A stretch of DNA of 64,000 nucleotides, taken from contig JAMWBK010000012.1 of NCBI GenBank assembly GCA_029953675.1, forward strand, positions 558,001-622,000. Direction: 5' to 3'. The position numbers were made by a program, and so were the translations under genes. Below are positions 7,111 to 53,789 of this stretch, in pieces. The stretch is from Rhodosorus marinus CCMP1338. Its lineage: Eukaryota > Plantae > Rhodophyta. Positions within the stretch are counted from its first letter, which is position 1. Every line of letters begins with the position of its first letter. The notes under the pieces were generated by a model. That model was not told where the DNA came from and did no database searches. It saw nothing but the letters and a program-made list of their open reading frames with translations.

Positions 7111-8338
7111 GATGGATTTACTAGCCTGAGTGGGGAACACTATTTTGATGGGTCAGGAGTAAAAGGACAATTCCACGTGCAGGATCGTCGCGGAGAGTTT
7201 CTTTCTCTTCTGAGCGCAGAGAAATATTAGTATTTCCTTCCCTCTTTATTTTTTCAGTAAGAGAACTAAGTATTGGAATATCAACCTGAGGGGGAAAGTC
7301 TCCAGCCTCCCCATGGTGACCTGGTTCGTCCCGTACAAGGACAAACTAATAATTTTAAAAAACAGATATTGAACATACAAAGAGAGTTTGGATGGACACG
7401 TATCTTCAACAGCAAAACTGCGAATGATAACTGTTATCAAAACTCTCACCTGGTGCGGCAACGCGTATATTTGGTAGCAACCATGAGACTCAGCACTTAA
7501 ATACATTGATTCAATAAACGGGGTTGATAGACCTATCATTCATTCAAATCAGGCTAAGGTGGAAGGATCACGTAACCCGAGGAATAGGGCGAAGGGTGAA
7601 AAAAACGATCTGCTTACTCCAGATTAAGCTTTGTAAAGGACGGACCGCCAAATGGTCGCGTCTCCCATGGTTTAACGCGAAGAGAGGTGGTTTTACTTTA
7701 CGAAGCCAGGACGATTGTGCAACCGGAGGCATGGCGCGAATAGGGAAAACGGCTTTTAGTCGAAATAAAGTGTTGTAAAGGACTGACTGGTCAATGGTAG
7801 TATCCCTCATGGTTTGTCGGAAGAAACGAGTGCCACCATGCAGCTACGGCTTCTCCTGATGGAGATTTTGGCACAACGCTCGAGGGCGCAACCTATCAAA
7901 GGAGCTAATTTTAGAACTGGTCGGCTTGTGGGGGCATCTCCGCCGGTTTCATCTGTTCGAGAGTGAGAACATATTGGTGCAAAGATGAATCCGGGAGAGA
8001 TGCCACCACCAACCGCCCAGTCGCAGGCTTAGCTGCTTTGATAGATGACCATATAGAACATATGACCATCAAGAACATATGACCATCACGAGGGGCTGTA
8101 CTTCCGCGAGACTACCCGTTCCTTCTGGGGGGCAAAAATCACGGTACTAACACCGACCTGTCCTTGACAGCAACACTTGAGGAGGAGTTTTGTGACGCGA
8201 AAGCATTCCTCGCGCGGTGTTATGTTATGGCGAACGCGTAGCATAATTCAAGAACCCCCCATAACAAGCGATCAGTCAGTTCTTTCGCTTATTGGAACGA
8301 TCATCACTGTATATACGCAGACGACTCGCTAGTGCAAC

Positions 8339-8866
8339 GGGGCTTACGGTTGAGGTTGAGTCGGAACTGCCCAGATCCATCTCGGACTCTGCACCGCCCC
8401 GTTGTATATCCGATCTCCTCGTCTCCGACGCTCCTGCCAGACGCTCAACATATGTGGACCTTGCGATTACCTGCCCCGTGGCCAGCGCCCACCTCACCGC
8501 AGCCGCCCGCCGCCGGGGGGCCGCGGCTTCAGCCCTTCGAAGAGTTAAGGAACGACGGTATGCTGAGAGCATGGCCAGTCTGCCTTGCGCTGAGGGTCGC
8601 TCTCACCGGTTCCAGCCATTCATTGTGGAAAGCTTTGGTCACGTGGATAAGTCGGGTTTAGAGTGGTTGCGGAAATGTTTTGCTGAGCATCCTACTGAAT
8701 ATTTGGCGCTCTTGAGGCGTTTAAGTGTCTCCCTTTGGCGATATTCCAGCGACATGCATTCCGAGGCGCGCCATCGGCGCCTGGGGTTGCATGCTTCCCT
8801 CCCTAGTTATTAGTTCATCTTCACGCCTTGCGTAGCGGTTCAGGCTATGCTAGTAAAGTCCAGTCC
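8339..8866 (+). mobile_element. Family B1 5'-truncated copy (RLE domain)
   Basis: ORF ends RRLGLHASLPSY; 3' hairpin and AGTAAAGTCC tail; TSD AGTGCAAC at 8331-8338 and 8867-8874. Confidence 0.9.
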
Positions 8867-10079
8867 AGTGCAACCACATGCGCCACTGAGGGTCCCGCGG
8901 CTGCGCACGATACCAGGATATCTGCAATTGAGAAAAGAAATGGTACAGATTTCAACGATTTTATGGCCCCGTTGGTAAGCCAAATCAATCATTCCAACCG
9001 GCTCGTCCAGATTCTGAGGCCCCAAAGCGTGCCCAAATGTTTACCCAATGATTGCTGGGTCGGTTCGGTCGGGTTGCAGAGGGCGAGGAGCTCGTCTAGC
9101 GGGGCCTTGTGAAAAAGGTGTGTATGCGTGTGTTTGTCTATGGAAGGATAAGAAACTTTTGTAGAAATTGAACAGGTGACTGTGCTGCTGCTGACGCCGT
9201 AGCCTCATCAGAGGTGCACTTTCTCTAGGGTGCAGTTAAAATAATAAGATGTTGGAAGGAATTCGGCTTTAGGATCTCTACTGCTCATACTCCGTCTCGC
9301 ACGCAGCTCACAGATATCAACACTGAAGCACTCACTTCGTTGATTCCCAGGATACTCACAGGGAAAGCAAGAATATGGCCCAAACCACCAGAATATGTAC
9401 TTCATGAATACTAACAGAAAAGGTAAAAACGGAAACGGGCGATTCTTCACTATGACGGTCGTCTCATCTGGCAGTGGCACAACCATGGCGCTCTCTCGCA
9501 GCCAGTGAAACTGGGAAAATCCCGAAAAATGGGTTAAAGCCAGTCCTGCAGAGGGATCGCTCGAGTAAAAACATCACGGTGCCTCTACCTCCATTGATTT
9601 CTGATGTCTAATTCTAAGAGCGTCTTGACCACTACTCGGGTATTATTACTATCAGAGTATAGTGTGTTGACCAGGGCGCAGTAAAGAAGTGTACCTACCT
9701 CCCTCTAATCGGTCCCTAGGGGATTACTAAAGCTACTGAAATTGGTAATCGCTGTTCTGGCTTCTACAACAAGCTCCATGACTCTGAAAGAACCTCAAGT
9801 TTCAACTTTTTGTCTTCCCTCTAGCGCAATTCCTCACGTTCCATGATGCTCTTAGTAAAAAGACACCATCCCCTTTGTCTTCGCGTTCCTACCGCAAGAG
9901 TCTGAGGGTCGCGAAGCAAAGTACGCGTTGCTGAGTGCCTCGTGTACCTAGCAAGAGAGTTTTGATTTAACGATTGTATGTTGAATATGAGTGTCAGTCG
10001 AAGATCTTCTCTTAGTACCTGTCTTCGCGTTCAACCATGGGAGGTAGCTGCCATTGACCAGTGGGCCCTTTACAACACT

Positions 10080-12360
10080 GGCTTTATTGGGCTTTACTGG
10101 CTTTATTGGCTTTATTAGCATACTGGCTTTATTAGCATAGCCTACAGCGCTACGCAAACCGTTAAAAGAAACTAAGAAGTAGGTAGGGAAGCGTGTAAAC
10201 CCAGGCGCCGATGGCGCGACTCGGCAAGCATGCTGCTCGAAAATCGCCACAGAGAGACACTTAAGCGCCGCAAAAGTTCCAAGTACTCAACAGGATGCTC
10301 AGTGAAACATTTTCGCAACCACTCCAAACCCGACTTCTCCACGTCACCAAAGCTTTCCACAATGAAAGGCTGGAACCGGTGGGAGCGACCCTCAGCGCGA
10401 GGCAGGCTGGCCATCCTCGCAGCATACCGTCGTTCCTTCCCGCGGCGAAGGGCCGAAGAGCTGCTCCCCGGCGGCGGGCGGCAGCCGTGAGATGGGCACT
10501 TGCCACAGGGTATGTAATCGCGAGGTCAACATATGCTGAGCGTCTGGCGGCAGCATCGGATACGAGGAGATCTGCGATACAGCGGGGCGGTGCCCTATCC
10601 GAGACCGATCTGGGTTGTTCCGATTCCACCTCAACCGTATGCCCTACCCGAGTCAGACATTCGCTGAGAATGTACTTGAAGCGAGTGTGACGCCTCGTAC
10701 GAAGACCTCTCAACAATCCGCATGAACCTAAGAAATGGTAACCACAAGCATCGATCCGACTCTCACATCCCTGATAGAAAGACGGCCGATTAGAGTGCCA
10801 CGGAGCTTGTGGCAAACCCAGGTAAATCCGTGCGGCAGAGCGAAACTGGAAGGCATCCAGACGGTGACCCAGTGATGACGGCAGGGTCTTTAACCACAAA
10901 TGTGAAAGATGGCCTCCCATGCCGCGGAGGCGAGCGGCGGTGGTAGGCGGTGTGAGTGGAGAGTTGAGCAAGATTGCGTGAGCGGCACTGTGTTGGACCC
11001 AGTTGAGGCTATGTTGTATCACATCAGTGCGGGAGCTCCACAATCGGCTCAGACCCGGGTAATCGGCAACCGGTGACCCGGGGCTAGCTTCCCCCTCGTC
11101 GGCGAGTACTCTGTCTATGGTAGAGTCCTCGAGCGCCTCAGTTCGTCCCCATACTGTTATACAGCTCCTTCCAGGAGCGAAATATGGATCGGATCTCGTC
11201 CGGCACGGCGTTACACTTGCTGAACGCCTGTTGCAGAGCATCATAATTACTCAAAAGCGGCGGCGGAAGGGTCACGGGGTCTTCGCTATTCAGTGCTCTA
11301 GCCAAAAGGCAAGCACTTCGCATCTGAAAACTCACCAAGGTGCGAAGTGCGGTAGCCCAGGAGGCGACCGCCGCTGCCGAGCATACGAGTCCACGGTCGG
11401 CCACTCCAAATCCGCCTAATCGTAAAGGGAGGGCAATCTGGCAACGAAATAGGTCCCTGTCAGGAGAGCTTCCACATGCAGGGGTTCATAGCAGCGTTCC
11501 CCAGTGCTTCAGCGTTGCCTCGTCCGCCTTGGCTGCCATTCACGAGCCCCAGTGCGGTGGAAGGCTTCGCAGCCAGTAATTCAGTCGGGGGCCGGCACAA
11601 AAGCGGGAGAGCCGGCAGGCCGATTGGAGCATGCTATCTGGTAGGCGCTCAATGGCGTCGGTGAGCTGCTTATGGCGCTCTAAAACTCGTTCGCAAGAGT
11701 CCTGGACAAAATTGTCACTCGCCAAACCGACGCCATGGTGCTCGAGCCCCGCATGTTCACCAAGGGCCCGGAGACTAGGTGGCAGGGAGCCCCTCGAAAC
11801 TTCACGCGGGCCGAGAAAACGGCATTTTTCGGGTTCTGCGGTTAGACCTACGCCACGTGCGATTGCCTCGATCTGGGTCAGTCCCCGAGCCAAGGGCTCA
11901 GGAGTGCCCCGCAACGTCACGTCGTCATGGTAGGCACAGATGCGAAGCTCCGGCACCTCAGCCGCCAGTCGCTGGAGCACGAGCTGCAAGGCACAGGCGT
12001 GAAGTACCGGCCCACAAGGATCACCCTGTTGAACGCCAGTACGTGCTGCAAAAACAGAGCCCTGCGTTGTCAAGTAAGGGAGGCTCCCCCCTGCTTAAAT
12101 ACCGGATAGGAACGGCCACGCCTCCGGGAATACCCTGCGAATCACCTCCAAAGCATGCGTCCGCGAGACGTTGTTGAACGCGTTACGGAAGTGAACCACC
12201 AAAACGCCCCAATCAGGCCTACTGGCTCGCTCGAGCTCGATCGTATGGGTGATTAGTTCGCAAACCCCGGAAAATCCCACCCCTAGCTGCCAAGGCGCCA
12301 TAAAGGCGGTGGCTCGCTGGCGTAGGCGCTGGCATAGCCACCTCCCGGCGAGTTTCCGTT
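10080..12360 (-). mobile_element. Family B2 long degenerate copy (RT + CCHC + RLE, frameshifted)
   Basis: ORF pieces contain GVQQGDPCGP, AYHDD, FRNAFNNVSR, CQGC..H..C and YVDLAIT; multi-unit AATAAAGCC tail at the left end. Confidence 0.88.
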
Positions 12361-13145
12361 GGGCTTTACTAGCATAGCTGAAGCGCTACGCAAGGCGTGA
12401 AAAGGAACTAAGAACTAGGGAGGGAAGCGTGCAAACTCAGGCGCCGATGGCGAGCCTCGGCAAGCATGCTGCTAGAATATCGCTCCTCAGCGAATTTTTG
12501 ACTCGGATAGGGCATACGGTTGAGGTTGAGTCGGAACTGCCCAGATCAATTTCGGACTCTGCACCGCCCCGTTGTATAGCCGATCTCCTCGTCTCCGACG
12601 CTCCTGCCAGACGCTCAACATATGTGGACCTTGCGATTACCTGCCCCGTGGCCAGCGCCCGCCTCACCGCAGCCGCCCGCCGCCGGGGGGCCGCGGCTTC
12701 AGCCCTTCGAAGAGTTTAAGGAACGACGGTATGCTGAGAGCATGGCCAGTCTGCCTTGCGGGTCGGTCTCACCGGTTCCAGCCATCCATTGTGGAAAGCT
12801 TTGGTCACGTGGATAAGTCGGGTTTAGAGTGGTTGCGGAAATGTTTTGCTGAGCATCCTACTGAATATTTGGCGCTCTTGAGGCGTTTAAGTGTCTCCCT
12901 TTGGCGATATTCCAGCGACATGCTTTCCGAGGCGCGCCATCGGGCGCCTGGGGTTGCATGCTTCCCTCCCTAGTTATTAGGTCATCTTCACGCCTTGCGT
13001 AGCGGTTCAGGCTATTCTAGTAAAGTCCAGTAAAGTCCAGAATATCGCCACAGGGCGGCACTCAAACGCCGTAAAAGCACCAAGTACTCAGTAGGATGCT
13101 CAGCGAAACATTTCCGCAACCCCTCTAAACCCGACTTATCCACAT
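12361..13145. mobile_element. Family B3 fragment (minus) interrupted by a family B1 fragment (plus, 12484-13038)
   Basis: The host sequence resumes after the insert; TSD AGAATATCGC at 12474-12483 and 13039-13048. Confidence 0.88.
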
Positions 13146-13146
13146 A

Positions 13147-13302
13147 ACCTGGCTTTATTAGCATAGAATAAAGCGCTACGCAAACCGTTAAAAGGAACTA
13201 AGAACTAGGTAGGGAAGCGTGCAAACCTAGGCGCTGATGGCACGCCTCGGCAAGCATGCTGCTCGAATATCGCGACAGAGAGACACGTAAACGCCGGAAA
13301 AG
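13147..13302 (-). mobile_element. Family B2 short 3' fragment
   Basis: 3' UTR hairpin, AATAAAGCC tail and last codons of the RLE ORF. Confidence 0.8.
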
Positions 13303-13597: not shown

Positions 13598-14396
13598 GGA
13601 CTGGACTTTACTAGCATAGCCTGAAGCGCTACGCAAGGCGTGAAGATGAACTAATAACTAGGGAGGGAAGCATGCAACCCCAGGCGCCGATGGCGCGCCT
13701 CGGAATGCATGTCGCTGGAATATCGCCAAAGGGAGACACTTAAACGCCTCAAAAGCGCCAAATATTCAGTAGGATGCTCAGCAAAACATTTCCGCAACCA
13801 CTCTAAACCCGACTTATCGACGTGACCAAAGCTTTCCACAATGAATGGCTGGAACCGGTGAGACCGACCCTCAGCGCAAGGCAGACTGGCCATGCTCTCA
13901 GCATACCGTCGTTCCTTAACTCTTCGAAGGGCTGAAGCCGCGGCCCCCCGGCGGCGGGCGGCTGCGGTGAGGTGGGCGCTGGCCACGGGGCAGGTAATCG
14001 CAAGGTCCACATATGTTGAGCGTCTGGCAGCAGCGTCGGAGACGAGGAGATCGGCTATACAACGGGGCAGTGCAGAGTCCGAGATGGATCTGGGCAGTTC
14101 CGACTCAACCTCAACCGTATGCCCTATCCGAGTCAAAGATTCGCTGAGGATGTACTTGAGGCGAGTGTGACGCCTCGTACGGAGACCTCGCAACAGTCCG
14201 CAGGAACCCAGGAAGTGGTAGCCACAAGCGTCAATCCGGCTCTCACATCCCTGACAGAAAGACGGCCGATTAGAGTGCCACGGAGCCTGTGGCAAACCGA
14301 GATAGATCCGTGCGGCAGAACGGAACTGGAAAGCATCGAGACGATGACTCAATGACGACGGTAGAGTGGTTAACCACAAGTGCGAGAGGTGGCCCC
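13598..14396 (-). mobile_element. Family B1 5'-truncated copy (CCHC + RLE)
   Basis: ORF 13651-14421 matches the other B1 copies; B-type 3' end. Confidence 0.9.
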
Positions 14397-14881
14397 CCAA
14401 TAAAAGTCTATTTTTAGACATCTACTCAGTTGAAATCGAGGGTTGAGTTTCTAACTCAATTGATGTTCACAGCTGTCATGCGGAGTTTTGCTGCTGAACG
14501 TGCATGTCCATAAGCCCATCCATTTTCTCTAAATACATGTCCACCAGTGGAATAGATGTCCACTAGAGAAATAAATGTGTACTTTGAGACATATGCTCAT
14601 CAGTTCATTTCAGGAGGTGGGTTTCCAACTCAATTGATGTTCCAATAGTCAGGTCTCCTTTCCAACCAGCTCGTCACTCTCTGTAGTTCCATTTCAAGTT
14701 GTAGCCTTCCAGAAACATACGAGAGGGTGTACCTTGCTAATAATAGACGGGGATTACTCCATACTCGATTGAATACTGGCGACGAATATTTTGGCACATC
14801 ACCACTCTCAGGAGAGCGCTAAAGGTTGCCGGAACCGGGATGTGCAATCCCATTTTAACTCACCAGTCCTAGTATGCAGGT

Positions 14882-14920
14882 ACGCCTTGCGTAGCGCTTC
14901 AGGCTATGCTAGTAAAGTCC
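14882..14920 (+). mobile_element. Family B1 micro-insertion (39 nt: hairpin + one tail unit)
   Basis: TSD AGTATGCAGGT at 14871-14881 and 14921-14931. Confidence 0.85.
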
Positions 14921-15610: not shown

Positions 15611-15657
15611 GTTGATGCTAATAAAGCCGTTGCTAGTAAAGTCCAATAAAGCCGTTG
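15611..15657 (+). mobile_element. Nested family B tail-only micro-insertions
   Basis: CTAGTAAAGTCC (15633-15644) flanked by AATAAAGCCGTTG twice, which itself contains a B2 tail unit. Confidence 0.65.
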
Positions 15658-16868: not shown

Positions 16869-17161
16869 AAGTTGTAGAATTAATACTGGAGGGTACCATC
16901 GGTAGACTCTGCGCATCATGTGCAATGTGCATCAGCAGCTTTCGAGCAGTATGCGTTGCTCGGAAACCCTAGGAAAAAGAGCAAAAAAACATAGTGAAGA
17001 CGTAAATCACGCGCCTGCAACATCAATAGCACCAGCCTAGCCAGCCTTCACACAGGAGAAAAGGGTCTACTACAAGAACAGCCTCTCGGGTCGCTCACGG
17101 CAGATTTAAACTATCGTACAACTCACAGGTCAGAATAGCTCATCTAGTACTAGTGGTGAAC

Positions 17162-17930
17162 GACCCTGCCGTCATCACTGGGTCACCGTCTGGATGCCTT
17201 CCAGTTTCGCTCTGCCGCACGGATTTACCTGGGTTTGCCACAAGCTCCGTGGCACTCTAATCGGCCGTCTTTCTCTCAGGGATGTGAGAGTCGGATCGAT
17301 GCTTGTGGTTACCATTTCTTAGGTTCATGCGGATTGTTGAGAGGTCTTCGTACGAGGCGTCACACTCGCTTCAAGTACATTCTCAGCGAATCTCTGACTC
17401 GGGTAGGGCATACGGTTGAGGTGGAATCGGAACTACCCAGATCGGTCTCGGATAGGGCACTGCCCCGCTGTATCGCAGATCTCCTCGTCTCCGATGCTGC
17501 CGCCAGACGCTCAGCATATGTTGACCTCGCGAGTACATGCCCTGTGGCAAGCGCCCATCTCACGGCTGCCGCCCGCCGCCGGGGGGGGTTGCTGCTTCGG
17601 CCCTTCGCCGCGTGAAGGAACGGCGGTATGCTGAGAGTATGGCCAGCCTGCCTCGCGCTGAGGGTCGCTCCCACCGGTTCCAGCCTTTCATTGTGGAAAG
17701 CTTTGGTGACGTGGAGAAGTCGGGTTTGGAGTGGTTGCGGAAATGTTTCACTGAGCATCCTGTTGAATACTTGGAACTCTTGCGGCTTAAGTGTCTCTCT
17801 GTGGCGATATTCGAGCAGCATGCTTGCCGAGGCGCACCATCGGCGCCTGGGTTTACACGCTTCCCTACCTAGTTCTTAGTTCCTTTTAACGGTTTGCGTA
17901 GCGCTGTAGGCTATGCTAATAAAGCCAGCC
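17162..17930 (+). mobile_element. Family B2 5'-truncated copy, frameshifted
   Basis: CCHC/RLE coding pieces; TSD AGTACTAG at 17146-17153 and 17931-17938. Confidence 0.88.
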
Positions 17931-24851: not shown

Positions 24852-24859
24852 ATAACGTA

Positions 24860-26604
24860 TTTATGATGGTCTTCAACACGCGTTCAGGAGGTGCAACGCC
24901 GTGCCGGACGCAAATCGGTCCCGCTTTCGTTCCTGGAGGGAGCTGTTATGGGGACGAGCTGAAGCGATTGAGGATTCTCCCCTCGACCGAGTTCTTGCCG
25001 ATGACGGAGAGGCTCGCCCCGGGTCACCTGTTGCAGACTACCCGGGTTTGAGCCGATTGTGGAGCTCCCGCACTGATGTGATTCAACATAGCCTCACCTG
25101 GGGCCAACACAGTGCCGCTCACACAGTCATGCTCAATTCTCCTCTCACGCCGCCTCCCACTGCCGCTCGTCTCCGCGGCATGGGAGGCCACCTCTCGCAC
25201 TTGTGGTTAACCACTCTACCGTCGTCATTGAGTCATCGTCTCGATGCTTTCCAGTTCCGTTCTGCCGCACGGATCTATCTCGGTTTGCCACAGGCTCCGT
25301 GGCACTCTAATCGGCCGTCTTTCTGTCAGGGATGTGAGAGCCGGATTGACGCTTGTGGCTACCACTTCCTGGGTTCCTGCGGACTGTTGAGAGGTCTCCG
25401 TACGAGGCGTCACACTCGCCTCAAGTACATCCTCAGCGAATTTTTGACTCGGATAGGGCACACGGTTGAGGTTGAGTCGGAACTGCCCAGATCAATCTCG
25501 GACTCTGCACCGCCCCGTTGTATAGCCGATCTCCTCGTCTCCGACGCTGCTGCCAGACGCTCAACATACGTGGAGCTTGCGATTACCTGCCCCGTGGCCA
25601 GCGCCCACCTCGCCGCAGCCGCCCGCCGCCGGGGGACCGCGGCTTCAGCCCTTCGAAGAGTTAAGGAACGACGGTATGCTGAGAGCATGGCCAGTCTGCC
25701 TTGCGCTGAGGGTCGCTCTCACGGGTTCCAGCCATTCATTGTGGAAAGCTTTGGTCACGTGGATAAGTCGGGTTTAGAGTGGTTGCGGAAATGTTTTGCT
25801 GAGCATCCTACTGAATATTTGGCGCTCTGCAAATAACCTTTCTTGGGACTTGCACCGTGCTGCATATGGCCGACTCCTCGCGCAGATGGTCTCATCTAGT
25901 TAAAATGTGAACTCATAAATGTTAAAGAAGCGCTCATGGGTTTCTCAATCGCGGCTTCAGCCCTTCGAAGAGTTAAGGAACGACGGTATGCTGAGAGCAT
26001 GGCCAGTCTGCCTTGCGCTGAGGGTCGCTCTCACGGGTTCCAGCCATTCATTGTGGAAAGCTTTGGTCACGTGGATAAGTCGGGTTTAGAGTGGTTGCGG
26101 AAATGTTTTGCTGAGCATCCTACTGAATATTTGGCGCTCTGCAAATAACCTTTCTTGGGACTTGCACCGTGCTGCATATGGCCGACTCCTCGCGCAGATG
26201 GTCTCATCTAGTTAAAATGTGAACTCATAAATGTTAAAGAAGCGCTCATGGGTTTCTCAATCGCGGCTTCAGCCCTTCGAAGAGTTAAGGAACGACGGTA
26301 TGCTGAGAGCATGGCCAGTCTGCCTTGCGCTGAGGTTCGCTCTCACCGGTTCCAGCCATTCATTGTGGAAAGCTTTGGTCACGTCGATAAGTCGGGTTTA
26401 GAGTGGTTGCGGAAATGTTTTGCTGAGCATCCTACTGAATATTTGGCGCTCTTGAGGCGTTTAAGTGTCTCTCTTTGGCGATATTCCAGCGACATGCTTT
26501 CCGAGGCGCGCCATCGGCGCCTGGGGTTGCATGCTTCCCTCCCTAGTTATTAGTTCATCTTCACGCCTTGCGTAGCGCTTCAGGCTATGCTCGTAAAGTC
26601 CAGT
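24860..26604 (+). mobile_element. Family B1 composite insertion with an internal 312-bp chimeric tandem duplication
   Basis: B1 body 24860-25829; units restart at 25638, 25950 and 26262; complete B 3' end at ~26550-26604. Confidence 0.9.
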
Positions 26605-27512: not shown

Positions 27513-28053
27513 GAGTCTTTCAGCACAAGTCCATGTCCGAATTCGGGAAACCTGGGGGGTTGGGGAAAAAGTTCTGTGAGGGGTCATATCGAAGTCCGAG
27601 ACCTACTCGAAACTTTTATGGAAAGAATGATTTACCAAATCAAATAGTCCACTCATTTGATCCCGAGCCAGAGTCAAGAATTATGATTGGTGATGGTCCC
27701 TAAGAATCACCAATAAAAATTCTTGAGTCGTTTATAAATCAGGTTAAGGATTATGATTAGATGTTCTATAAGATACCTTGATGAATCTTTTACTCCCCGC
27801 GGATACAGTTATTGGTTTCGTGAGGGTGTATGGTGCTGGCTTTTGGTGGTTTTGAGTCGCAATTGTGTTCTTCGGTGGGAGGCGCTTCTTTCTGCAGCCT
27901 TTCCCCCGCATCTTCTAGTGGTGTGGTGCGTGCTGGGGGTTGCTAGCGCCCCTTGGAGGTCGTGGTGGTTTTTCTTTGGTTGCAAACGTTGGGAACAAGT
28001 TCTCTTTTTGGGGGTTTCGTGGGGGAATCGGTTTTTCACACCTTCCAATCGTT

Positions 28054-29178
28054 ATGGTTGGGGTTTCCCCACCTATTCCGGCGGACGGAGCCGTTCTCTC
28101 AGCGCGCGTGGAGCTCTGCGTGGGCGGGTTTAGTACCGCGGCCACCCTCACGGACTGCGCTGACGAGTTAGCCCATGGGATCTGCTCGAAACTGACGAGT
28201 CTTCTTGTGACTGCTTCCCAGGAACACCGCCTGCCCCTGCTGATCGCCTATTTGGAGCGCTTCTCCGCCTCCGCGCCTGCCCTATACCCCCCGGTGCCCG
28301 TCCTACGCAGGGGCTCTTCTGAACAACGCACGACGGCAATGGTGCGTATGATGCCACAACACATCCCTATTGACTCTTCTCGCCAACTATCTCCGTTCCA
28401 CTTTGTTTGGATGACGAACGTGCGTCCCCAGACCCCCTCTCGTGGTCGGGGCCGCGCGCCCGTCCACTACCGCGATTTTCGCGACACCATGGCTTCCTCC
28501 CTTGGGGTGGCCCCGTCTGAATTCCTATATGTGGACTTCACGGGCCCTCATGCCTGTTTTCTTGTTACTGACTCGGCTTACCAGTTCCTTCAATCGCTTG
28601 TAACCACCCCCGCGCCCCAGCGCTCTGCTCTGGCCAACATGATACTGACTCGTCCTCATGTCTCTTTGTTTGTCGAGTTCGATCGTTTTGACGCCGGCTG
28701 GGTTCCTCCGTCGGCCTTGCAAAACCTGGATGCCTCGCAGGCTTCGGTTGTCGCGCTACACACTCATGCGGCGCGGCTCTCGCGCATACAGGCGAGCCTC
28801 TTCGCGCGTTTTCCTCCTCGCGGGGTCCTCCGCACCGCGCTAGAGGCCTTCCTCTCCACTGAGGCCACCCTGCTGGAAGCCCACCCTGCGTTTGACCTTC
28901 TGCCGCCGACTCTTGAGCACCCTTCCTCCCCTCGCCCTGTCTCCGAGGCTCGTGACACCGACATGGCAGAAGCACCATCGGCCTCTCCGAATCCGCTGGC
29001 TCTGGACACCCTCAGTCAAGACTCCGCTGCTGAAAACCCTGTGTCTACTTTCTTCAGGTCTTTTAGTTCCTTCGTGCGCCCTCCACGTAAGCGTCGTGCG
29101 GCTCCTGAGCCTCCCTCCGAGGCACCTCCTCCGGATATTCGATCTGCCTTCCCGACTGAGGGGAGGCCCGATGTCTGA
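28054..29178 (+). CDS. ORF1 of family A element (374 aa, no recognised motif)
   Basis: First in-frame ATG at 28054; open to TGA at 29178; a divergent homologue lies at 53790-55195. Confidence 0.75.
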   Translation: MVGVSPPIPADGAVLSARVELCVGGFSTAATLTDCADELAHGICSKLTSLLVTASQEHRLPLLIAYLERFSASAPALYPPVPVLRRGSSEQRTTAMVRMMPQHIPIDSSRQLSPFHFVWMTNVRPQTPSRGRGRAPVHYRDFRDTMASSLGVAPSEFLYVDFTGPHACFLVTDSAYQFLQSLVTTPAPQRSALANMILTRPHVSLFVEFDRFDAGWVPPSALQNLDASQASVVALHTHAARLSRIQASLFARFPPRGVLRTALEAFLSTEATLLEAHPAFDLLPPTLEHPSSPRPVSEARDTDMAEAPSASPNPLALDTLSQDSAAENPVSTFFRSFSSFVRPPRKRRAAPEPPSEAPPPDIRSAFPTEGRPDV

Positions 29179-32100
29179 GTCTTCCTCCTCCGCGTGCGTG
29201 TCGTCCCGGTTACCCCTGTTTACCAGTGACCGCTCAGCCTGGCATGAGCGTGTTCTCTCGTGGTTTTCGCACCTTGTCGCCTCCTACCCGGACGGTTCCC
29301 TTCCCCTTTGTCGTCAGAGCACGGCCGTACGGCTCCCTCGTCGACTTCATAAGCCCCTAGGATTGGTGTTGGATTTTCTCTGGCAGCAGGTCGCGGCGAA
29401 CCCTCACTGCTCTCTTCGCTGGGAACTCTTGTTCTTTTTTTTCCCCGCCTCGTGCTCACCTCCTCTACCGTCCCCCTCAACCCACATCCTCGCCGGGTCC
29501 ACCCTCGCCGAAAACTGCAAATGTTCCTTTCCGGCGACTTTGAGGACCTCGAACGTCTTTATTTCGCTTCTCTCTCTTCCTTTTCTCCTAGTGCTCCCTC
29601 AGCTTTTAGGTCTTCTCGACAGAATCGGGCGCGTCACGCGGTGGCAGGCGGTGATCTGCGGCGGGCAGCCGGGATCCTCCAGCAGCGGCAACCTGTGGTT
29701 CCATACTCCAATGATCTTTCTTCACCGCTCCGTTTGCTCTTTCCCTCGGAAGGCTCCCCTTGGGACTCCTCGTTTGAATCAGTGTTGGAAGAGTACCGCG
29801 CCGCGCCACATCCCAGTGCGCGGTTAGTGGTCAATCTGGAGGCGGTGCGTGAGTTGGTTCATGATGCTCCGAAGGGCCGTTCCCCAGGGCCCTCGGGGCT
29901 GCGGGTGGAATATCTCCGTTTCTTAAGTGATGAAGGTTTGAAGGCGTTGGCGTGGGTGGTCGAAGCGCTTGTGAATGGTGATCCCCTGTGTGAGTGTGCG
30001 TGGTTCTTGGTCGGGCGTTCGCAGTTGTGTCTGCTTTCGAAGCCCGGCCACACGGCCTCGAGCCCTGCTATTCGCCCTATTGGCCTGGTTGAGGTGGTCC
30101 GCAAATTGGCGGCGCGATGGTTAGTGAAAATCCTGGTTCCCGAATCCCGCCGTTTCTTTGGGCACGTGCAGTTAGGCGTGGGCTATGGTGGTGGCTGTGA
30201 GTTGTTGTCTGTTTTACTCCGTTCGGAAATGGCGTACTCCCCAGATTCTGGGCTCCTCTCTGTAGATTTTACCAATGCGTTCAACCGCGTCTCTCGTCCG
30301 GCTCTCATGCACGTGGTGCGCGAAGTCTTCCCTGTAGGCTTTCCCTTTGTTAGTAGACTTTATTCTCCGCTTGGTCGTGGGGCTACATATGACACCCTTG
30401 GCGCTTCCTCACACACGTTTGCGGCGCGCACAGGGGTACAACAGGGTGATCCCTTGTCCCCTTTCCTACATGCCTGTGGACTACAACTCGTCTTGCTTCG
30501 TCTTCGCTCCGAATTCCCGCAGGTTCGTACAGTTGCATACCACGACGACGTGTGCCTCCTGGGGCCCCTTGATACTCTAGCACTCGCTTATGATCGTCTC
30601 CGCTCCTTGGCTTCGCGGGTTGACCTGGAGGTTAATCATCACAAATCGTTCTACTGGGGAGGTGTAGCTGCACAAGAGCAGCAGGTACCTGCGTCGTTCC
30701 AGGATATTTGGAGACCGGATGGTTTTGTCCACTTAGGCATCCCCTACGGGTCGCCGTCCTTCGTTGAAGGCGAGTTGCTGCAGCTCCTCGGTAAGCACAG
30801 ACAGCTGGTTGCAGAGCTTCGACGGCTACCTCCGGGCTTTCTCCAGTGCTCGTTGTTGCTGTTTCGGTATTGTTGCAGTCAGCGGTTAACCTATTGGCTT
30901 CGCTCACTTCCAACTCATTGGGGCCGGTGGTTGGCCACTCGTGCGGATGCTGAAAGTTTCCGTGACCTGGGGTATTTTCTCGATGAAGAGCTGAGCGCTC
31001 TGCCGCGACCCACCTGTGATGTTGTGCGCGCCCAGGTAGGCCTCCCATTGCGATTGGGGGGACTGGGCCTCTGCAATCGTGTTGTGGTCCAACCTGCAGC
31101 TGCAGTAGGGGCCTGGGGAACCGCACTTCCCACTTTGAGCAGCTTGGGTATCTCGAAGTTCCGCAATTTGATGGCGAGCCTCTCGCGGGGTGTCTTGCTT
31201 CCCAGCGTACCGGAAAGCGCCCAAGACTTGTTTCTGGAGCTCCAAACCGCCCTGAATTCCTGTACTAGTCTCCCTGAAACCGTTCAACCCCGTCTTCCTG
31301 ACTGGCGAGCTGTATTTGACCGCTCTCGAGGCTCCGCCCCGGGGATTCGTCCTGCGCCTGAACCTGTTCTAGGGGAGATTGACCCAGTGGTTGCCGCAGA
31401 AGAAGAAGTTCCAGTTGATGCTCCTGATGATTCCCAGCGCGCTGGGAGCCGAGCTCAAGCACGCACGGATGCGCTGCAAAATATCCTTTCTTGGGACTTG
31501 CACCGTGCTGCATATGGCCGACTCCTCGCGCAGATGGTCTCATCTTCTCGCGCTCGCGCCCGCCTACGTAGTCTTGGAGGGGTTATTAGCTCTCAGTGGC
31601 TCATGACCGTACCAGCCTTTCCGCCACTCACACTGTCGGATTTCGAAGTGCGTACTTCACTGCGCTTATACCTCGGCTTACATCAGCCCCCTTGGCCGTA
31701 CGAGATGGGTTCGTCGTGCCCTCTCTGCTCTCAGACTGAAGACAACGCAGATTTTGGCGCCCACCTGCTCGCTAGTTGCCCGGCGGTGAAAGGTGCTCGA
31801 ACCCGCCGCCACACACGGATCTTGAACCTGTTATACCGGGAACTTCGGCCTATAGTCCGGCAAGCCGGTCTGGAAATCGAACGTGAGAAACCTTTACCCG
31901 TCGCGGACTTTCAAAATGATGAACGCCGTGTAGCCGACCTGGTGATCACCTGTGACGACAGCCGCCGTACCACATACGTTGATCTTGCTGTTCCTAACCC
32001 TCAAGCTAGTCGTTATCTCCCGGCGGCGGGGGAGCGCCGTGGATCTGCCGCCGCCAGCATGAGACGCCGCAAAGAGATCAAATACGCGGGGGCTTTGTCT

Positions 32101-32316
32101 TCCCCTGGTGTTCGTGCTTCGGCACTAGCACATCGCTTGGTACCCCTGATCATTGAGTGCTTTGGGTTCATGGACTCTGTTGGTTCTCGCTGGCTTCGGG
32201 AGTTGTTCCGCGAACGCCCTGACCGTCTTCAATCGTTGTTTACCCGCTTAAGTTTCCTGCTGTGGCGCATGAATGCCGCTTTGATGTTGGAGGCGCGAGT
32301 ACTTCGCCGCGCTTAG
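29171..32316 (+). CDS. ORF2 of family A: reverse transcriptase + CCHC zinc knuckle + restriction-like endonuclease (one frame change at the T8 run, 29435-29442)
   Basis: ATG at 29171 overlaps the ORF1 stop; frame change into the 29452-32316 frame; motifs GRSPGPSG, RPIG, DFTNAFN, GVQQGDPLSP, YHDD, CPLC..H..C, RRH, VADL..YVDLAV, KEIKY, IECFG. Confidence 0.9.
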
Positions 32317-33066
32317 TCTTTTTTTCCCCTCGGGGTTTTTTTTTTCAGCCTCCGATTAAACCATTCGTTCGATGAATAGTGTGAATCTTAATACATCGAG
32401 AATCGCTCAATGAAGATGATTGGAAGTAGGTCGCAATAAGTGAAAATATTGGGTAAGTGATTGTGAAAAGTAAGAAAAATTTCTGAAAACGCAGTATCTC
32501 TCTTTTTTGTTTTGGTTCAGTTTCGGGGGGAGTCCCGAAGCTATAGTTGAGCGCCGTAAAGGAGACGAAAACATGGAGGGTGTTTTAACAACCACACACA
32601 CACAGTCAAAGGATGATGAAAGACAGGAATGATGATGATGATGAATACGAGATTGCGATCAGATGGCCAGTTGTACGCGTCCTAGATGTGAACGTTTTCC
32701 CCAAGCAACTTTGAAGAAGACGAAGCAACCGTCTTGCTCAGCAAGAGGAGAGGTCAAGAAGGATTATAAATTAGACTTGAAATTATTCAGGTAAACCTAG
32801 ACCAATATTTTGTGAAGGGCAGTGTTGGAACTCCATATGGGATCTCGGCATCTCATACAGGCTAGGGCGGGTGATTTAGATTAGAATCAGTTACTGCTAT
32901 ATCTAATATTGACGGAGGGTATAGCGCGTGCAGGGGATGGGATCAAAGGGGTCAACCTGTTCTGTTACAGCTTTGTCAAAACTTGGTAGTGTTCAGGAGA
33001 TAATTCAAGGCTCCATCAATCTATCCCTTATTATCAGATAATTAATTTCGAAACTGGAAATATACT

Positions 33067-34260
33067 CTACTGGTAACGTTTCTTCAAAACACACTTAGCC
33101 AAGCCTCTCCTGAATTCGGTGACAAACTCTAGCAGTCTTGCTCTGGAAACTCTGTGGCGAAGTTTCTCGTTCAGTGCCTCAAGTTGCTCGTCTACTTCGG
33201 CCTTGTCCAATGCAATTTGGGACTCGATGTCGTCCATGCGGGCGGTTATTCCGGAGATATCATCTACGCTCTGGGATTGTAGATCCACAATCGCGAGAAT
33301 TTCGGCGTCTATTCTTGCAATGTCACTCGAAGAGTCGAGCTTCGATGTTAACCTCGCATCCAATTCACTAATAAGCTCCTCCACTTCCACGAGGGACGTC
33401 TTGCCGTTCAAAGCGGTCTCCAGGTCGGTCAATTTTTGCCCTAGCTCCGCCTTCAGGCTTGCGATCACCTCATCAGTATCTGCCCGTGCTGCAGCAACCT
33501 CCGATGAGATCTTGAACTCAAGCCCGGATTCTACACCGTTAATCAGTTCAATCAGAGCGGTCTCCAGGTCAGTCAAGCCCTGACCTAGCTGATCAACATT
33601 TTGGTCTAGCTTCGCGTCCAGGGTTCCGACCAACCCAATAGTATTATCGTTTGCTGCTGCAATCTCCTGCGAGATCTTGTCTTCGAGTCTAGCTTCTACC
33701 TCGGTAATAGTTTGGCCCGTAGCGGCGTTCAGGTCTGTGACGTCTTGTTCTATTTCATCAATTCTTTGGTTTAGCTGTACCTCCAGACCATCGACCAATG
33801 CACCAGCGTGTGCCTTTGCCTCATCCAGGTTTTGAAGAATAGCAGCGGTTGTAAAGGTTACAAGAGTCGTAAGCTGCGCCTCGAGGCTATCGACGCGTGC
33901 AATTGTCGCGTTCAGTTCGGACTCCAAGTGTACGTTGGTTGCATTAAGCTCCGACAACAGGGAATTCTGGCTCTGGACGGTTTGGTTCAAAACTGTGATT
34001 AATGCGGCATTTTGCGCAATCACAACTGTGAGTTCGGTTAAGGACACACGGGACGAAATATCCAATTGGGGACGATAAACGCCGTCAAGATCCTGGTCAT
34101 CGCTACTCCCAGCCCAGGGCAGGTTAGACTCCAATGTTCCGTCCACCGAACGTATCGTGAAATGCTCATCTTGCAGTTGGGTGGACTGACCGAGAACCGC
34201 ATCGCAACCAAACAGAATCGCGAACAATACCACAACCCTAAACAAACCCTTTGCTTCCAT
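33067..34260 (-). CDS. Secreted, acidic, probably coiled-coil protein (397 aa), function unknown
   Basis: ATG start, hydrophobic N-terminus ending ..DAVLG, heptad-like Leu/Glu/Asp/Ala-rich body, several N-x-T sequons, basic C-terminal tail. Confidence 0.8.
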   Translation of the reverse strand: MEAKGLFRVVVLFAILFGCDAVLGQSTQLQDEHFTIRSVDGTLESNLPWAGSSDDQDLDGVYRPQLDISSRVSLTELTVVIAQNAALITVLNQTVQSQNSLLSELNATNVHLESELNATIARVDSLEAQLTTLVTFTTAAILQNLDEAKAHAGALVDGLEVQLNQRIDEIEQDVTDLNAATGQTITEVEARLEDKISQEIAAANDNTIGLVGTLDAKLDQNVDQLGQGLTDLETALIELINGVESGLEFKISSEVAAARADTDEVIASLKAELGQKLTDLETALNGKTSLVEVEELISELDARLTSKLDSSSDIARIDAEILAIVDLQSQSVDDISGITARMDDIESQIALDKAEVDEQLEALNEKLRHRVSRARLLEFVTEFRRGLAKCVLKKRYQ

Positions 34261-37063: not shown

Positions 37064-37415
37064 AGTGAAACGACGGTATACTGAGAGTATCGCCAGCCTG
37101 CCTCGCGCTGAGGGTCGCTCCCACCGGTTCCAACCTTTCATTGTGGAAAGCTTTGGTCACGTGAAGAAGTCGGGTTTGGAGTGGTTGCGGAAATGTTTCA
37201 CTGAGCATCCTGTTGAATACTTAGAACTTTTGCGGCGCTTAAGTGTCTCTCTGTGGCGACATTCGAGCAGCATGCTTGCCGAGGCGCGCCATCGGCGCCT
37301 GGGTTTGGCACGCTTCCCTACCTAGTTCTTAGTGCTAGTAAAGTCCAGTTCTTAGTTCCTTTTCACGGTTTGCAGCGCTGTAGGCTATGCTAGTAAAGTC
37401 CAGTCCAATAAAGCC
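37064..37415 (+). mobile_element. Family B2 short copy with an internally repeated 3' end
   Basis: RLE C-terminus, a tail unit in mid-UTR (~37333-37347), then a full hairpin and mixed tail. Confidence 0.85.
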
Positions 37416-37679: not shown

Positions 37680-38340
37680 TTTGCACTCTAATCGCCTTTT
37701 CTTCTTCCAGGACTCTGGGAGTTGTATTGACGGTTGTGGTTGTCACTTTCTGGGTTCGTGTGGCGTGTGAATAGGTCATCGTACGAAACGTCACACCCGT
37801 CTGAAACCCGGCTGAAGTTCATCCTGGGCGAACATTTCACCAGGGTTGGTCACAAGGTTGAAGTTGAATCGGAAATACCCCGATCAGCCTCCGCCATCGC
37901 GTCCCCTCACCCTTTGCTCCACGGATCTCCTGGTATCGGACGCAGCCGCCACACGCTCAGAATGTGTGGACCTCGCTTTCAAATGCCCTGTGTCAAGTAC
38001 CTAACCCCCCCTTGACGCTCTCGCCGGGGACGGGGTGGGCAGCTTCTGTACTAAGCCGACTGAAGGAACGACGGTACGCCGAGAGCATGGCCTGTATCCC
38101 CTGAGAAGAGGGCCTTGTCACAGGTTCCAGCCTTTCACTGTGGTAAGCTTTCGGCATTGCAGGTTCGATGTGGAGTGCTTTGGGCATCTGGAAAAGTCCA
38201 GCTTGGACTGGCTGCAGAACGTATTAGGGTCCTGTTAAATATCTATGACTACTAAGCCGTTTAATGGCCGCTCTGGGGCGATATTCTAGCAGTATGCTCG
38301 TCATGTAGCGCCTGGGCTTGCACGCTTTTAGACTTAGTTC
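37680..38340 (+). mobile_element. Old, diverged family B-like fragment
   Basis: Decayed RLKFILGEHFTRVGHKVEVESEIPRS and RRY/FQPF motifs. Confidence 0.7.
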
Positions 38341-39082: not shown

Positions 39083-40578
39083 GGCTATGCTAATAAATGT
39101 TTAACTCGGGTAAGGCATACGGGTTGAGGTGGAATCGGAAATACCCAGATCGGTCTCGGACACGGCGCCGCCCCGCTGTATCGCAGATCTTCTGCGACCC
39201 GACGCTCAGCATATGTTGACCTCGCGATCACATGCCCTGTCGCCAGCGCCCAGGTCACGGCTGCTGCCCGCCGCCGAGGGGCAGCCGCTTCGGCTCTTCG
39301 ACGAGTGAAGGAACGACGGTATGCTGAGAGCATGGCCAGTCTACCCCACACCGAGGGTCGCTCCCACCGGTTCCAGCCTTTCATTGTGGAAAGCTTTGGT
39401 CATGAGGATAAGTCGGGTTTAGAGTGGTTGCGGAAATGTTTCGCTGAGCATCTTACTGAGTACTTGGCGCTTTTACGGCGTTTGAGTGCCGCCCTGTGGC
39501 GATATTCTAGCAGCATGCTTGCCGAGGCGCGCCATCGGCGCCTGGGTTTGCACGCTTCCCTCCCTAGTTCTTAGTTCCTTTTCACGGCTTGCGTAGCGCT
39601 TCAGACTACCCGGGTTTGAGCCGATTGTGGAGCTCCCGCACTGATGTGATTCAACATAGCCTCACCTGGGGCCAACACAGTGCCGCTCACACAGTCATGC
39701 TCAATTCTCCTCTCACCCCGCCTACCACTGCCGCTCGTCTCCGCGGCATGGGAGGCCATCTCTCGCACTTGTGGCTAACCACTCTACCGTCGTCATTGAG
39801 TCATCGTCTCGATGCTTTCCAGTTCCGTTCTACCGCGCGGATCTATCTCGGTTTGCCACAGGCTCCGTGGCACTCTAATCGGCCTTCTTTCTGTCAGGGA
39901 TGTGAGAGCCGGATTGACGCTTGTGGCTACCACTTCCTGGGTTCCTGCGAACTGTTGAGAGGTCTCCGTACGAGGCGTCACACTCGCCTCAAGTACATCC
40001 TCAGCGAATTTTTGACTCGGATAGGGCATACGGTTGAGGTTGAGTCGGAACTGCCCAGATCAATCTCGGACTCTGCACCGCCCCGTTGTATAGCCGATCT
40101 CCTCGTCTCCGACGCTGCTGCCAGACGCTCAACATATGTGGACCTTGCGATTACCTGCCCCGTGGCCAGCGCCCACCTCACCGCAGCCGCCCACCGCCGG
40201 GGGGCCGCGGCTTCAGCCCTTCGAAGAGTTAAGGAACGACGGTATGCTGAGAGCATGGCCAGTCTGCCTTGCGCTGAGGGTCGCTCTCACCGGTTCCAGC
40301 CATTCATTGTGGAAAGCTTTGGTCACGTCGATAAGTCGGGTTTAGAGTGGTTGCGGAAATGTTTTGCTGAGCATCCTACTGAATATTTGGCGCTCTTGAG
40401 GCGTTTAAGTGTCTCCCTTTGGCGATATTCCAGCCACATGCTTTCCGAGGCGCGCCATCGGCGCCTGGGGCTGCATGCTTCCCTCCCTAGTTATTAGTTC
40501 ATCTTCACGCCTTGCGTAGCGCTTCAGGCTATGCTAGTAAAGTCCAGTGTGCTCGTAAAGTCCAGTAAAGTCCAGTCC
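39083..40578 (+). mobile_element. Head-to-tail family B chain: tail stub, B3 fragment (39104-39604), B1 fragment (39605-40578)
   Basis: B3 ends at GCGCTTCAG (hairpin loop) and is joined directly to a B1 internal sequence; multi-unit tail at 40533-40578. Confidence 0.88.
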
Positions 40579-45231: not shown

Positions 45232-45490
45232 TTTTACTGGTTATTATTAGCATAGCCTAAAGCGCTACGCAGGGCGTGAAAAGCAACTAAGAATTTGGTA
45301 GGGAAGCGTGCAAACCCAGGCGCCGCGCCTCGGCAAGTATGCTGCTAGAATATCGCCACAGAGAGACACTAAAGCGGCGTAAGAGTTCCAAGTATTCGGT
45401 AGGATGCTCAGCGAAACATTTCCGCAACCGCTCCAAACCCGACTTCTCCACGTGACCAAAGCTTTCCACAATAAAAGGCTGGAACCGGTG
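45232..45490 (-). mobile_element. Family B short copy
   Basis: ESFGHVEKSGLE..RRLGLHASLP; hairpin and tail. Confidence 0.85.
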
Positions 45491-46964: not shown

Positions 46965-47112
46965 CTGGTTTTACTGGTTTTTACTGGTTTTTATTGGTTT
47001 TTATTGGCTTTATTGGCTTTATTGGCTTTATTGGTTTTAATTGGCTTGGCTTTACTGGCCTTACTGGCTTTACTGGCTTTACTGGCTTTACTGGACTTTA
47101 CTGGACTTTACT
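46965..47112 (-). repeat. Long 9-10-bp tandem-repeat 3' tail of a family B element
   Basis: Minus strand: (AGTAAAGTCC)2 (AGTAAAGCC)n (AATAAAGCC)n (AGTAAAACC)2, about 16 units. Confidence 0.92.
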
Positions 47113-52606: not shown

Positions 52607-52772
52607 AGTCGCCTAAGTGGCTTTATTAGCATAGCCTATAGCGCTACAGGGAAAAAGTCGCTTGCGCGACGAAAAACAATTTCTTGATGCGCGAGTGTTG
52701 GTAGCTAAGCCCGGTCTGCTTTAGTAAAAAGCGAAAAGAGAGTTCGTACAAGACAGAGCTACCTCGCGAAAC

Positions 52773-53776: not shown

Positions 53777-53789
53777 CTGCAGGTCCATT

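Follow-up and report, generated by a model that had tools for sequence, protein, structure and literature searches.

A 64,000-nucleotide stretch of nuclear DNA from the red alga Rhodosorus marinus CCMP1338 (positions 558,001 to 622,000 of contig JAMWBK010000012.1, assembly GCA_029953675.1; hereafter the window) carries two insertions of a retrotransposon into copies of its own family at the same nucleotide and in antisense orientation. The element, which we call family B, is an R2-like long interspersed nuclear element (LINE) bearing a restriction-like endonuclease (RLE). At both loci a plus-strand copy of subfamily B1 lies within a minus-strand fragment of subfamily B3 at TGCT^AGAATATC (12474 and 52878), as the first-pass annotation had described and as can be read directly. 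This is most likely explained by an ordinary target preference and not by a device that silences sibling elements. The double hit is probably a by-product of a preference for CT^AG(W), where W is T or A, acting in dead fragments, combined with a neutral change by which the site at the tail of the element was copied in antisense. The sample behind the conclusions is formed by about 16 mapped B insertions, taken from the 64-kb window and about 50 kb of other loci.

Copies are designated by names such as c39096, and positions within the element (ref) are those of the longest B1 copy, 49760-52140(-). The parts of the two loci, with their target site duplications (TSDs), open reading frame (ORF) and untranslated region (UTR) portions, are the following.

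12360 to 12483, minus strand: host 1 (B3 fragment), 3′ part, with the ORF end, 3′UTR and a short tail
12470 to 12473: TGCT of locus 1, followed by TSD1 AGAATATCGC at 12474-12483, with TSD2 AGAATATCGC at 13039-13048
12484 to 13038, plus strand: insert 1, B1, 555 nt, 5′-truncated at ref 1811
13039 to about 13149, minus strand: host 1, 5′ part, which opens with TSD2 AGAATATCGC, the host resuming as CACAGGGCGG
52771 to 52885, minus strand: host 2 (B3 fragment), 3′ part, beside unique DNA
52874 to 52877: TGCT of locus 2, followed by TSD1 AGAATATC at 52878-52885, with TSD2 AGAATATC at 53681-53688
52886 to 52918, plus strand: stub of insert 2, 33 nt of B1-type 3′UTR (ref ~2305-2340)
52919 to 53680, plus strand: body of insert 2, B1, 5′-truncated at ref ~1607, starting ..LSHRLD, with tail TGCTAGTAAAGTCCAGTAAAGTCC
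53681 to 53778, minus strand: host 2, 5′ part, TSD2 AGAATATC, the host resuming as GCCATAGGGCGG, truncated at ref 2147 and followed by unique DNA

After removal of the insert and one TSD copy, both hosts align without gaps to the intact B3 copies c39096 and c52125 across ..GGCGATATTCTAGCAGCATGC... Insert 1 starts with TCCTCAGCGAATTT (..LSEF) and ends in the tail TTCTAGTAAAGTCCAGTAAAGTCC. The different 5′ ends and TSD lengths (10 vs 8 bp) noted earlier for the two inserts are seen in the sequence. Host 1 reaches to about 13149 and not to 13145, and there the 5′-truncation of the host (~ref 2134) adjoins the tail of c13149, the minus-strand copy that comes next.

The stub of insert 2 is probably the product of a template switch. 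We also considered it as the remnant of an earlier mini-insertion, which was ruled out since a remnant of this kind should still end in TATGCTAG and the stub does not. A piece of about 30-40 nt of B 3′UTR precedes a 5′-truncated body in two unrelated copies, at 52886-52918 and at 2928-2966 of L001, a locus on another contig of the same assembly. Both pieces stop ~20-25 nt short of the 3′ end, and these two stub-bearing copies suggest that a template switch may recur as reverse transcription ends. The sense junction at 47215/47219, located at the same ref position, was considered as a third hit and discarded; it is a tandem tail insertion with its 5′ join at an internal TCCAG.

The two B1-in-B3 insertions are independent. 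Flanks, private single-nucleotide polymorphisms, alleles, truncation points and 5′ ends were compared and all of them proved to be separate, as had been proposed. Over the ~555 nt shared by the inserts there is no private substitution in common, the private events being 8 in insert 1 and 5 in insert 2. The inserts differ at four G/C sites (alignment columns 131, 299, 344, and 538), where each allele is also found in other B1 copies, insert 1 matching c8340 at 3 of 4 alternative-allele sites; the inserts therefore derive from different source lineages. Their 5′ ends are ~200 nt apart plus the stub (ref 1811 vs stub + ref 1607), and their TSDs measure 10 and 8 bp. Between the hosts there are 7-8 differences in ~205 nt, and when they are compared with c39096 or c52125 no derived state is common to both. 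Their truncation points are ref 2134 and ref 2147, respectively, and their 3′ ends are also unlike. Host 1 stands between c13149 and c10121 in a head-to-tail array (c13149 > host 1 > c10121) and host 2 is located in unique DNA.

These comparisons bear on the possibility of a single ancestral B1-in-B3 insertion, the composite being later duplicated or gene-converted and the differences arising by later deletion. The hosts are indeed similar short fragments (ref 2134-2359 vs 2147-2351), and both inserts have exactly two tail units and an identical 3′ junction. The host flanks, however, are unrelated (tandem B array vs unique DNA), private substitutions are shared neither by the hosts nor by the inserts, and the four allele differences between the inserts are informative of lineage. 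Moreover, conversion of one 5′ junction into the other requires two precise deletions, one of them keeping the host GC in register. Because several exact deletions would be needed, we reject a single event with duplication as highly improbable.

Twin priming of L1 is known to yield inversions, and the inverted structure might in the same manner come from one RNA in one event, by twin priming or snap-back, given that B segments in inverted orientation adjoin. The outer and inner parts, however, belong to different subfamilies (86-92% identity vs 96-99% within B1), and the inner copy has its own TSDs in an otherwise colinear host. The inner TSDs and the subfamily difference rule out a twin-priming or inversion product, whose parts would come from one RNA and share outer TSDs, and we regard the probability of this origin as practically negligible.

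The site of both hits follows a rule that extends to the whole family. We derived it by reconstructing every insertion with readable flanks. The dinucleotide CT stands directly before a TSD starting with A[G/A] in 8 of the 9 insertions for which both TSD copies are readable (background 0.04; tail probability 5e-11). In unique DNA, each of the four insertions used a CTAG (p = 3.8e-6), extended in every case to CTAGT (p = 0.006). The earlier proposal of sequence-directed insertion is thus upheld, in the sense that CT^AG is the general site of family B. The target sites so reconstructed are listed here together with one tandem copy.

8340 to 8866, plus strand: c8340, B1, in unique DNA; target CGCT^AGTGCAAC, TSD AGTGCAAC at 8331-8338 and 8867-8874
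14882 to 14920, plus strand: c14882, B1, 39 nt, in unique DNA; target TCCT^AGTATGCAGGT, 11-bp TSD
17154 to 17930, plus strand: c17143, B2, in unique DNA; target ATCT^AGTACTAG, 8-bp TSD
c60405, B2, in unique DNA; target AGCT^AGTT..
the two ORF-site hits inside B; target TGCT^AGAATATC(GC)
37334 to 37346, plus strand: 13-nt B1 mini-insertion GCTAGTAAAGTCC, in sense, in the 3′UTR CT^AG of the B2-like c37069; target ACCT^AGTTCTTAGT, 10-bp TSD AGTTCTTAGT
15632 to 15644, plus strand: 13-nt B1 mini-insertion in a B2-type tail fragment; target GCT^AATAAAG, 12-bp TSD AATAAAGCCGTT
5′ junction of c49760, inside B, 11 nt past the same 3′UTR CT^AG in c52125; CCCT^AGTTCTTAGTT
c45233, inserted inside B; target GGC^AGTAAAAC
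47090 to 47219, minus strand: c47090, 130-nt B1, in tandem in the tail of c47215; its 5′ end follows an internal TCCAG, with 5 nt of tail microhomology

The last of these, c47090, matches c49760 at its 3′ end with 100% identity and probably represents a very recent event. B1 and B2 alike use CT^AG in unique DNA, in B tails, and in the 3′UTR CTAG of B2 and B3 copies. At least seven copies (c10121, host 1, c39096, c52125, c47090, c39602, and the second copy of L002, a transcript contig) start 4-16 nt past the CT^A(G/A) of another tail, with the exception of c39602, which begins 4 nt before it. The tetranucleotide itself is neither rare nor depleted in the window (179 CTAG observed vs 191 expected).

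Every B tail ends in ..TCC, followed by the AG of the target. Pure microhomology to the tail (TCCAG) was considered as the cause and ruled out, since the targets are CTAG and not CCAG. A strictly site-specific LINE with one target was equally discarded: four insertions lie in different unique sequences and the rest at three CTAGs of B and at B tails.

Two additional observations concern these junctions. The 13-nt mini-insertions GCT(A/C)GTAAAGTCC at 15632-15644, 37334-37346, and 40551-40563 have the same 5′ boundary; two of the three have clean TSDs (12 bp and 10 bp), and from their sequence they look like target-primed reverse transcription (TPRT) aborted at 13 nt. The 5′ junction of c49760 fits an insertion at the 3′UTR CT^AG of c52125 (49760-49800, 52125-52145). 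Past the c49760 tail, however, one would expect the rest of the c52125 3′UTR, and AAAGCC-type repeats follow there instead. Either a deletion occurred between the tails, or priming took place within the host tail and the 5′ end was joined upstream.

On the sense strand, the site within the ORF reads TGG CGA TAT TCN AGC (W R Y S S), where the serine codon is TCC in B1, TCG in B2, and TCT in B3. The CTAG of B3 thus arises from a synonymous third-position change of a Ser codon (TCC or TCG to TCT), and the comparison of copies bears out CCAG for B1 and CGAG for B2. It had been stated that only B3 has CTAG at this position. B3 does carry it; the motif is present, also uninterrupted, in the B2-like c45233 (45343) and in a divergent copy at 38270-38300. 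The copies with an intact site that are relevant here are the following.

39096 to 39608, plus strand: c39096, intact B3 paralogue; empty site GATATTCTAGCAGC at ~39503-39516
52125 to 52612, minus strand: c52125, intact B3 paralogue; site TGCTAGAACATC at 52181
45233 to 45490, minus strand: c45233, B2-like copy; uninterrupted TGCTAGAATATC (45343), with its own TSD AGTAAAAC inside tail-like sequence

Copy c39096 is followed by the B1 copy c39602, joined 4 nt before the tail CT^AG of c39096. Two of the six CTAG-bearing copies in the window are interrupted, or two of five without the divergent copy, vs none of 15 non-CTAG copies; this contrast (2/5 vs 0/15) is marginal alone (p ~0.05). Three further CGAG copies in L001 are uninterrupted. 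The strength of the case comes from the family-wide CT^AG rule and not from this in-window contrast. As for the claim that only B3 hosts are hit, both hosts at the ORF site are B3, and to this extent it stands. Each of the four B3 copies of the window has been hit by B1 at or near one of three CTAGs, but the same holds for B2 copies, B1 tails, and unique DNA.

CTAG is a palindrome, but the orientation of the insertions goes with the base that follows it: in every case the motif is read in the direction in which T or A comes next, while in the other direction it is followed by C or G. At the tail site (CTAGT in sense, CTAGC in antisense) and at the 3′UTR site (CTAGT in sense, CTAGG in antisense) the insertions are in sense; at the ORF site (CTAGC in sense, CTAGA in antisense) they are in antisense. 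The antisense orientation at the ORF site is thus accounted for, because only the antisense reading has A, and not C, after CTAG. The change to TCT in B3 therefore generated on the antisense strand a near-copy of the B tail site (TGCTAGAA). On both strands of the window TGCTAGWA occurs 19 times: 12 at B 3′ ends (including two mini-copies), 6 at the antisense ORF site, and once elsewhere.

B sequence holds ~12 of the 16 mapped insertions vs 29% of the CTAGW sites (p = 2e-4), and the hit sites and the tail site both have TGCT upstream and A at +4, which suggests a preference that goes beyond five bases, up to 8 nt. The enrichment in B would reflect either this longer preference or survival in dead repeats adding to it. 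A stricter alternative is that only 4-5 nt (CTAG plus T or A) are preferred, the double hit and the B-in-B excess being coincidence plus survival in dead repeats. In its favour, the probability that 10-16 mapped insertions distributed over 165 oriented CTAGW sites would strike the 5-6 copies of this site twice is p = 0.035-0.11, the window is 42% repeats, and its B-rich part is without annotated genes. The share of insertions in B, the bases common to the hit sites and the tail site, and the at least seven copies that start right behind a B tail argue against it, and we find it unlikely.

Several points weigh against our preferred explanation, that of a target preference combined with a neutral change. 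Under a model with CTAGW only, the two hits at the ORF site are unusual and not extreme (the p value just given), and tolerance of insertions in dead repeats could be in part the cause of the enrichment in B. Four of the six CTAG-bearing copies are uninterrupted. There are exceptions to the rule, namely, c45233 at GC^AG and the mini-copy 58398 at CA^AG, which has an unclear, imperfect TSD, and no TSD could be recognised for c13600 and c24859. Finally, the exact placement of the nick is deduced rather than read, because the AG that starts the TSD is shared with the terminal AG of the tail; the CT on the 5′ side is unaffected by this ambiguity.

The assignment of the element to a class is based on its protein. 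The reverse transcriptase (RT) domain RVT_1 (Pfam) is recognised in the ORF 50985-52082(-) with E = 2.9e-16, and the best solved relatives of this RT in the Protein Data Bank (PDB) are R2 proteins (E = 1.5e-9). The copies used were the following.

49760 to 52140, minus strand: c49760, the longest B1 copy, with the RT ORF at 50985-52082 and the C-terminal CCHC/RLE ORF at 49831-50991
13600 to 14421, minus strand: c13600, B1 copy with an intact C-terminal ORF of 256 amino acids (13651-14421), the source for the profile, the model, and the fold search

The ~250 C-terminal residues of B define a family with 393 members in a representative library; in its long members this domain is at the C-end, behind the RT, and in homologues of 1000-1300 amino acids RVT_1 alone is recognised in Pfam. 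In an alignment of 30 homologues of the C-terminal 256 amino acids, C56, C59, H69, C74, H85, and E106 are invariant and D124, D139, and K169 are near-invariant. The profile matches the CCHC plus RLE region of R2 (9nl3, residues 985-1131, E = 2.6e-11; 8gh6, residues 933-1014, E = 9e-10). The AlphaFold model of this region has a confidence (pLDDT) of 90.5, and a Foldseek search with it places R2 structures at the top (E = 5e-10, TMq 0.66), followed by PD-(D/E)xK nucleases. Considering RVT_1 together with the profile and fold matches of the CCHC/RLE region to R2, family B is an RLE-bearing, R2-like non-long-terminal-repeat retrotransposon.

Self-similar or repeated sequence makes up 42% of the window and family B about one-quarter of it, with ~22 copies that have a common 3′ end (ref ~2360) and starts scattered from ref 1 to 2350. 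Their flanks show TSDs of variable length (4-12 bp), without terminal repeats. The longest copies are 49760-52140(-), 47215-49302(-), and 10121-12362(-); no full-length copy was found in the window, L001, or L002. The tail is GCTAGTAAAGTCC(AGTAAAGTCC)n, with a repeat unit of 10 nt. In B1 the 3′ end is ..GCGCTTCAGGCTATGCTAGTAAAGTCC, after which AGTAAAGTCC or AGTCC units are repeated a varying number of times, and in B2 it is ..GCTAATAAAGCC...

Transcripts similar to B are present in contigs derived from MMETSP. The B ORFs are almost never called as genes, and the homologue searches returned P0004 as the sole NCBI entry; P0001, P0002, P0005, P0006, and P0007 lie on short contigs of transcripts or reads, in which no target site could be used. 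A metagenome scan with the B3 right flank AGAATATCGCCAYAGGGCGGCAC gave 0 matches, and one with the 3′ end GGCTATGCTARTAAAG gave chance matches, none of them B-like, the pattern being too short for that collection. In two Rhodosorus transcript contigs, L002 (JGI 3300016967, 5040 nt) and L124, cellular or copia-like sequence is joined to 5′-truncated B, and in one of the two, two B 3′ ends follow each other in tandem. Read-through transcription of B fragments therefore takes place in another strain.

We propose the following course of insertion. The machinery of the element would open the bottom strand at the centre of CT^AG, or at times of CT^AA, with approximately TGCT^AG(T/A)A as the most favourable context. 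The freed primer end (...TACT-3′ or ...TTCT-3′) may then pair with AG(UA) of the repeat tail of the RNA (..GUCC-AGUAAAGUCC-AG..); tails ending in ..TCC plus the target AG would fit a nick centred in CTAG, with ..CT pairing with the AG of the tail. The top strand would be cut 4-16 nt downstream (mostly 8-12 nt), giving rise to the TSD, and reverse transcription would mostly abort, leaving 5′-truncated copies of 13 nt to 2.4 kb. B copies would stack in tandem behind tails because the preferred sequence is their own 3′ end (TGCT^AGTAAAG). In B3 and a few other copies, a synonymous Ser change made an antisense TGCTAGAA, which young B1 RNAs hit independently at least twice in the window. The anatomy of the loci, the separate origin of the two events, the CT^AG rule, and the RT and RLE identity are read from the data; the part of the protein that recognises CTAG, the pairing of primer and tail, and a preference as long as 8 nt are inferred.

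The first-pass annotation had also proposed that these insertions inactivate a sibling subfamily and build inverted repeats with double-stranded RNA potential. The first part is not supported. Both hosts were already dead fragments of ~205-225 nt, 5′-truncated, and one of them is part of a tandem array of truncated copies; nothing was therefore inactivated. The second part is correct insofar as the arms are real and predicted to form long imperfect hairpins if transcribed. At locus 1 the arms 12378-12483 and 12904-13010 show 88% complementarity and the arms 12803-12912 and 13040-13149 show 87%; at locus 2 one pair of arms spans 115 nt with 91% complementarity and the other 97 nt with 86%. The predicted fold of the locus 1 RNA has -356.7 kcal/mol vs -278 ± 7 for shuffled sequences (z = -11).

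These data could be taken in favour of an evolved self-targeting that disables the sibling subfamily and whose inverted repeats feed RNA silencing; at both loci there are inverted arms of 97-125 nt with 86-91% complementarity, and the predicted fold of locus 1 is clearly below that of the shuffles. The hosts were, however, non-functional fragments of ~200 nt before the hit. The same rule puts B in unique DNA, in the tails of its own subfamily, and in B2 copies, the CTAG comes from a synonymous change, and the flanking base accounts for the orientation. We consider such an evolved system very unlikely. A broader scheme seems to us rather doubtful: the B endonuclease would be a putative CT^AG nickase with an asymmetric flank preference, its own 3′ end a self-renewing safe harbour, the synonymous change of the sibling an antisense decoy hit genome-wide, and the hairpin loci a source of small-RNA silencing of the family.

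By comparison with known systems, B resembles R2 (8gh6, 9dou, 9nl2, and 9nl3) in its single-ORF layout, with RT followed by CCHC and a PD-(D/E)xK restriction-like endonuclease, and in the hallmarks of TPRT (common 3′ end, 5′ truncations, TSDs); R2 is also the best match to B in sequence, profile, and fold. R2 is specific for 28S rDNA, whereas the target of B is a short CT^AG(W) in many places; the tail of B is a 10-nt repeat, and B is seen without the N-terminal region, its copies being 5′-truncated. Given that its targets are unrelated sequences that share CT^AG and not rDNA, B is not R2 proper. The RLE of EhLINE1 of Entamoeba nicks at the short consensus GTATT (PMC3118788). Like EhLINE1/EhSINE1, B is dispersed, with sites set by a short loose motif and not by one gene, and its insertion sites do share a common consensus. 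The motif of B differs in its palindromic core with an asymmetric flank and in being its own 3′ end, which leads to tandem and nested self-insertions; the nicking by B is deduced from junctions.

The majority of RLE LINE clades insert specifically into repeats, among them rDNA, spliced-leader genes, tRNA genes, transposons, and microsatellites, and HERO is largely non-specific (PMC4640811). B shares with R4/Dong, NeSL/Togen, some HERO, and Utopia the insertion into repeats, occasional tandems, and a simple-repeat 3′ end that matches the target. These differ from B, which goes for the most part into its own tail and copies where its target is repeated, rather than into a family of host genes or a microsatellite that was there before, and which is also found at CTAG in unique DNA. 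The Zepp LINE of Chlorella/Coccomyxa is known from clusters in which its copies are nested in one another (PMC3446292 and references there), and the transposon dimers of Drosophila originate mainly from repeated insertion at preferred sites, seen by TSDs and different 5′ truncations (McGurk and Barbash, doi 10.1101/158386). In both, as in B, one family accumulates nested or in tandem within itself. Zepp, in contrast to B, is L1-like and poly(A)-tailed, and the Drosophila dimers are mostly sense tandems, while in B an antisense site has been gained through a single substitution in a sibling lineage. L1, with its T-rich target and poly(A), and the telomere-repeat LINEs have primer-template pairing at the nick. 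In B, too, a short microhomology between the target end and the RNA tail sets the register of the junction; its tail is (AGUAAAGUCC)n instead, and to judge from the junctions only it would pair with AG(UA). On the whole, the behaviour of B is that of a short-motif RLE LINE in which the motif coincides with the 3′ end of the element itself.

The window contains other features apart from these loci. A second, related RLE LINE, family A, has a near full-length copy at 27940-32374(+) with an ORF of 954 amino acids (RVT_1), and truncated copies that end at 1840, 3410, 20628, and 44311. The tail of the family is a (CATT/CGTT)n repeat, and its C-terminal domain is 41% identical to that of B. No Pfam match was obtained for its N-terminal ORF of 412 amino acids, and a homologue search with the family A ORF for more Rhodosorus loci gave nothing. 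Other repeats of the window have 98-99.5% identity to L001; the copies of family A are 98-99.5% identical between contigs, and family A was therefore probably active recently. The B1 copy at 24859-26604 has a tandem duplication whose unit is formed by ref 2019-2209 and a 121-bp foreign piece (25829-25949 and 26141-26261), and the short tandem repeat GGGGTTACGTTAGTCT... is located directly upstream of 24859. The ORF of an ABC-2 type transporter at 55580-57457(-) corresponds exactly to an annotated gene product of JAMWBK010000012.1. Of the other cellular genes, that at 61485-63815(-) codes for an alkaline phosphatase and that at 33067-34260(-) is an ORF rich in repeats, whose match is weak and apolipoprotein-like. 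The B-rich region from 45.5 to 55.5 kb has no annotated gene in the assembly.

In the library searched, no paper coupling Rhodosorus with retrotransposons was found. The present analysis gives a first anatomy of an R2-like RLE LINE in a red alga, with a 10-nt repeat tail, TSDs of 4-16 bp, abortive copies of 13 nt, and a short palindromic motif for insertion. If the reading of CTAG resides in the RLE domain, the element would bear on how the restriction-like endonucleases of LINEs gain specificity. One neutral codon change can make the relative of a transposon a target, and target preference alone leads to tandem and head-to-head arrays, the raw material for satellites and hairpin loci.

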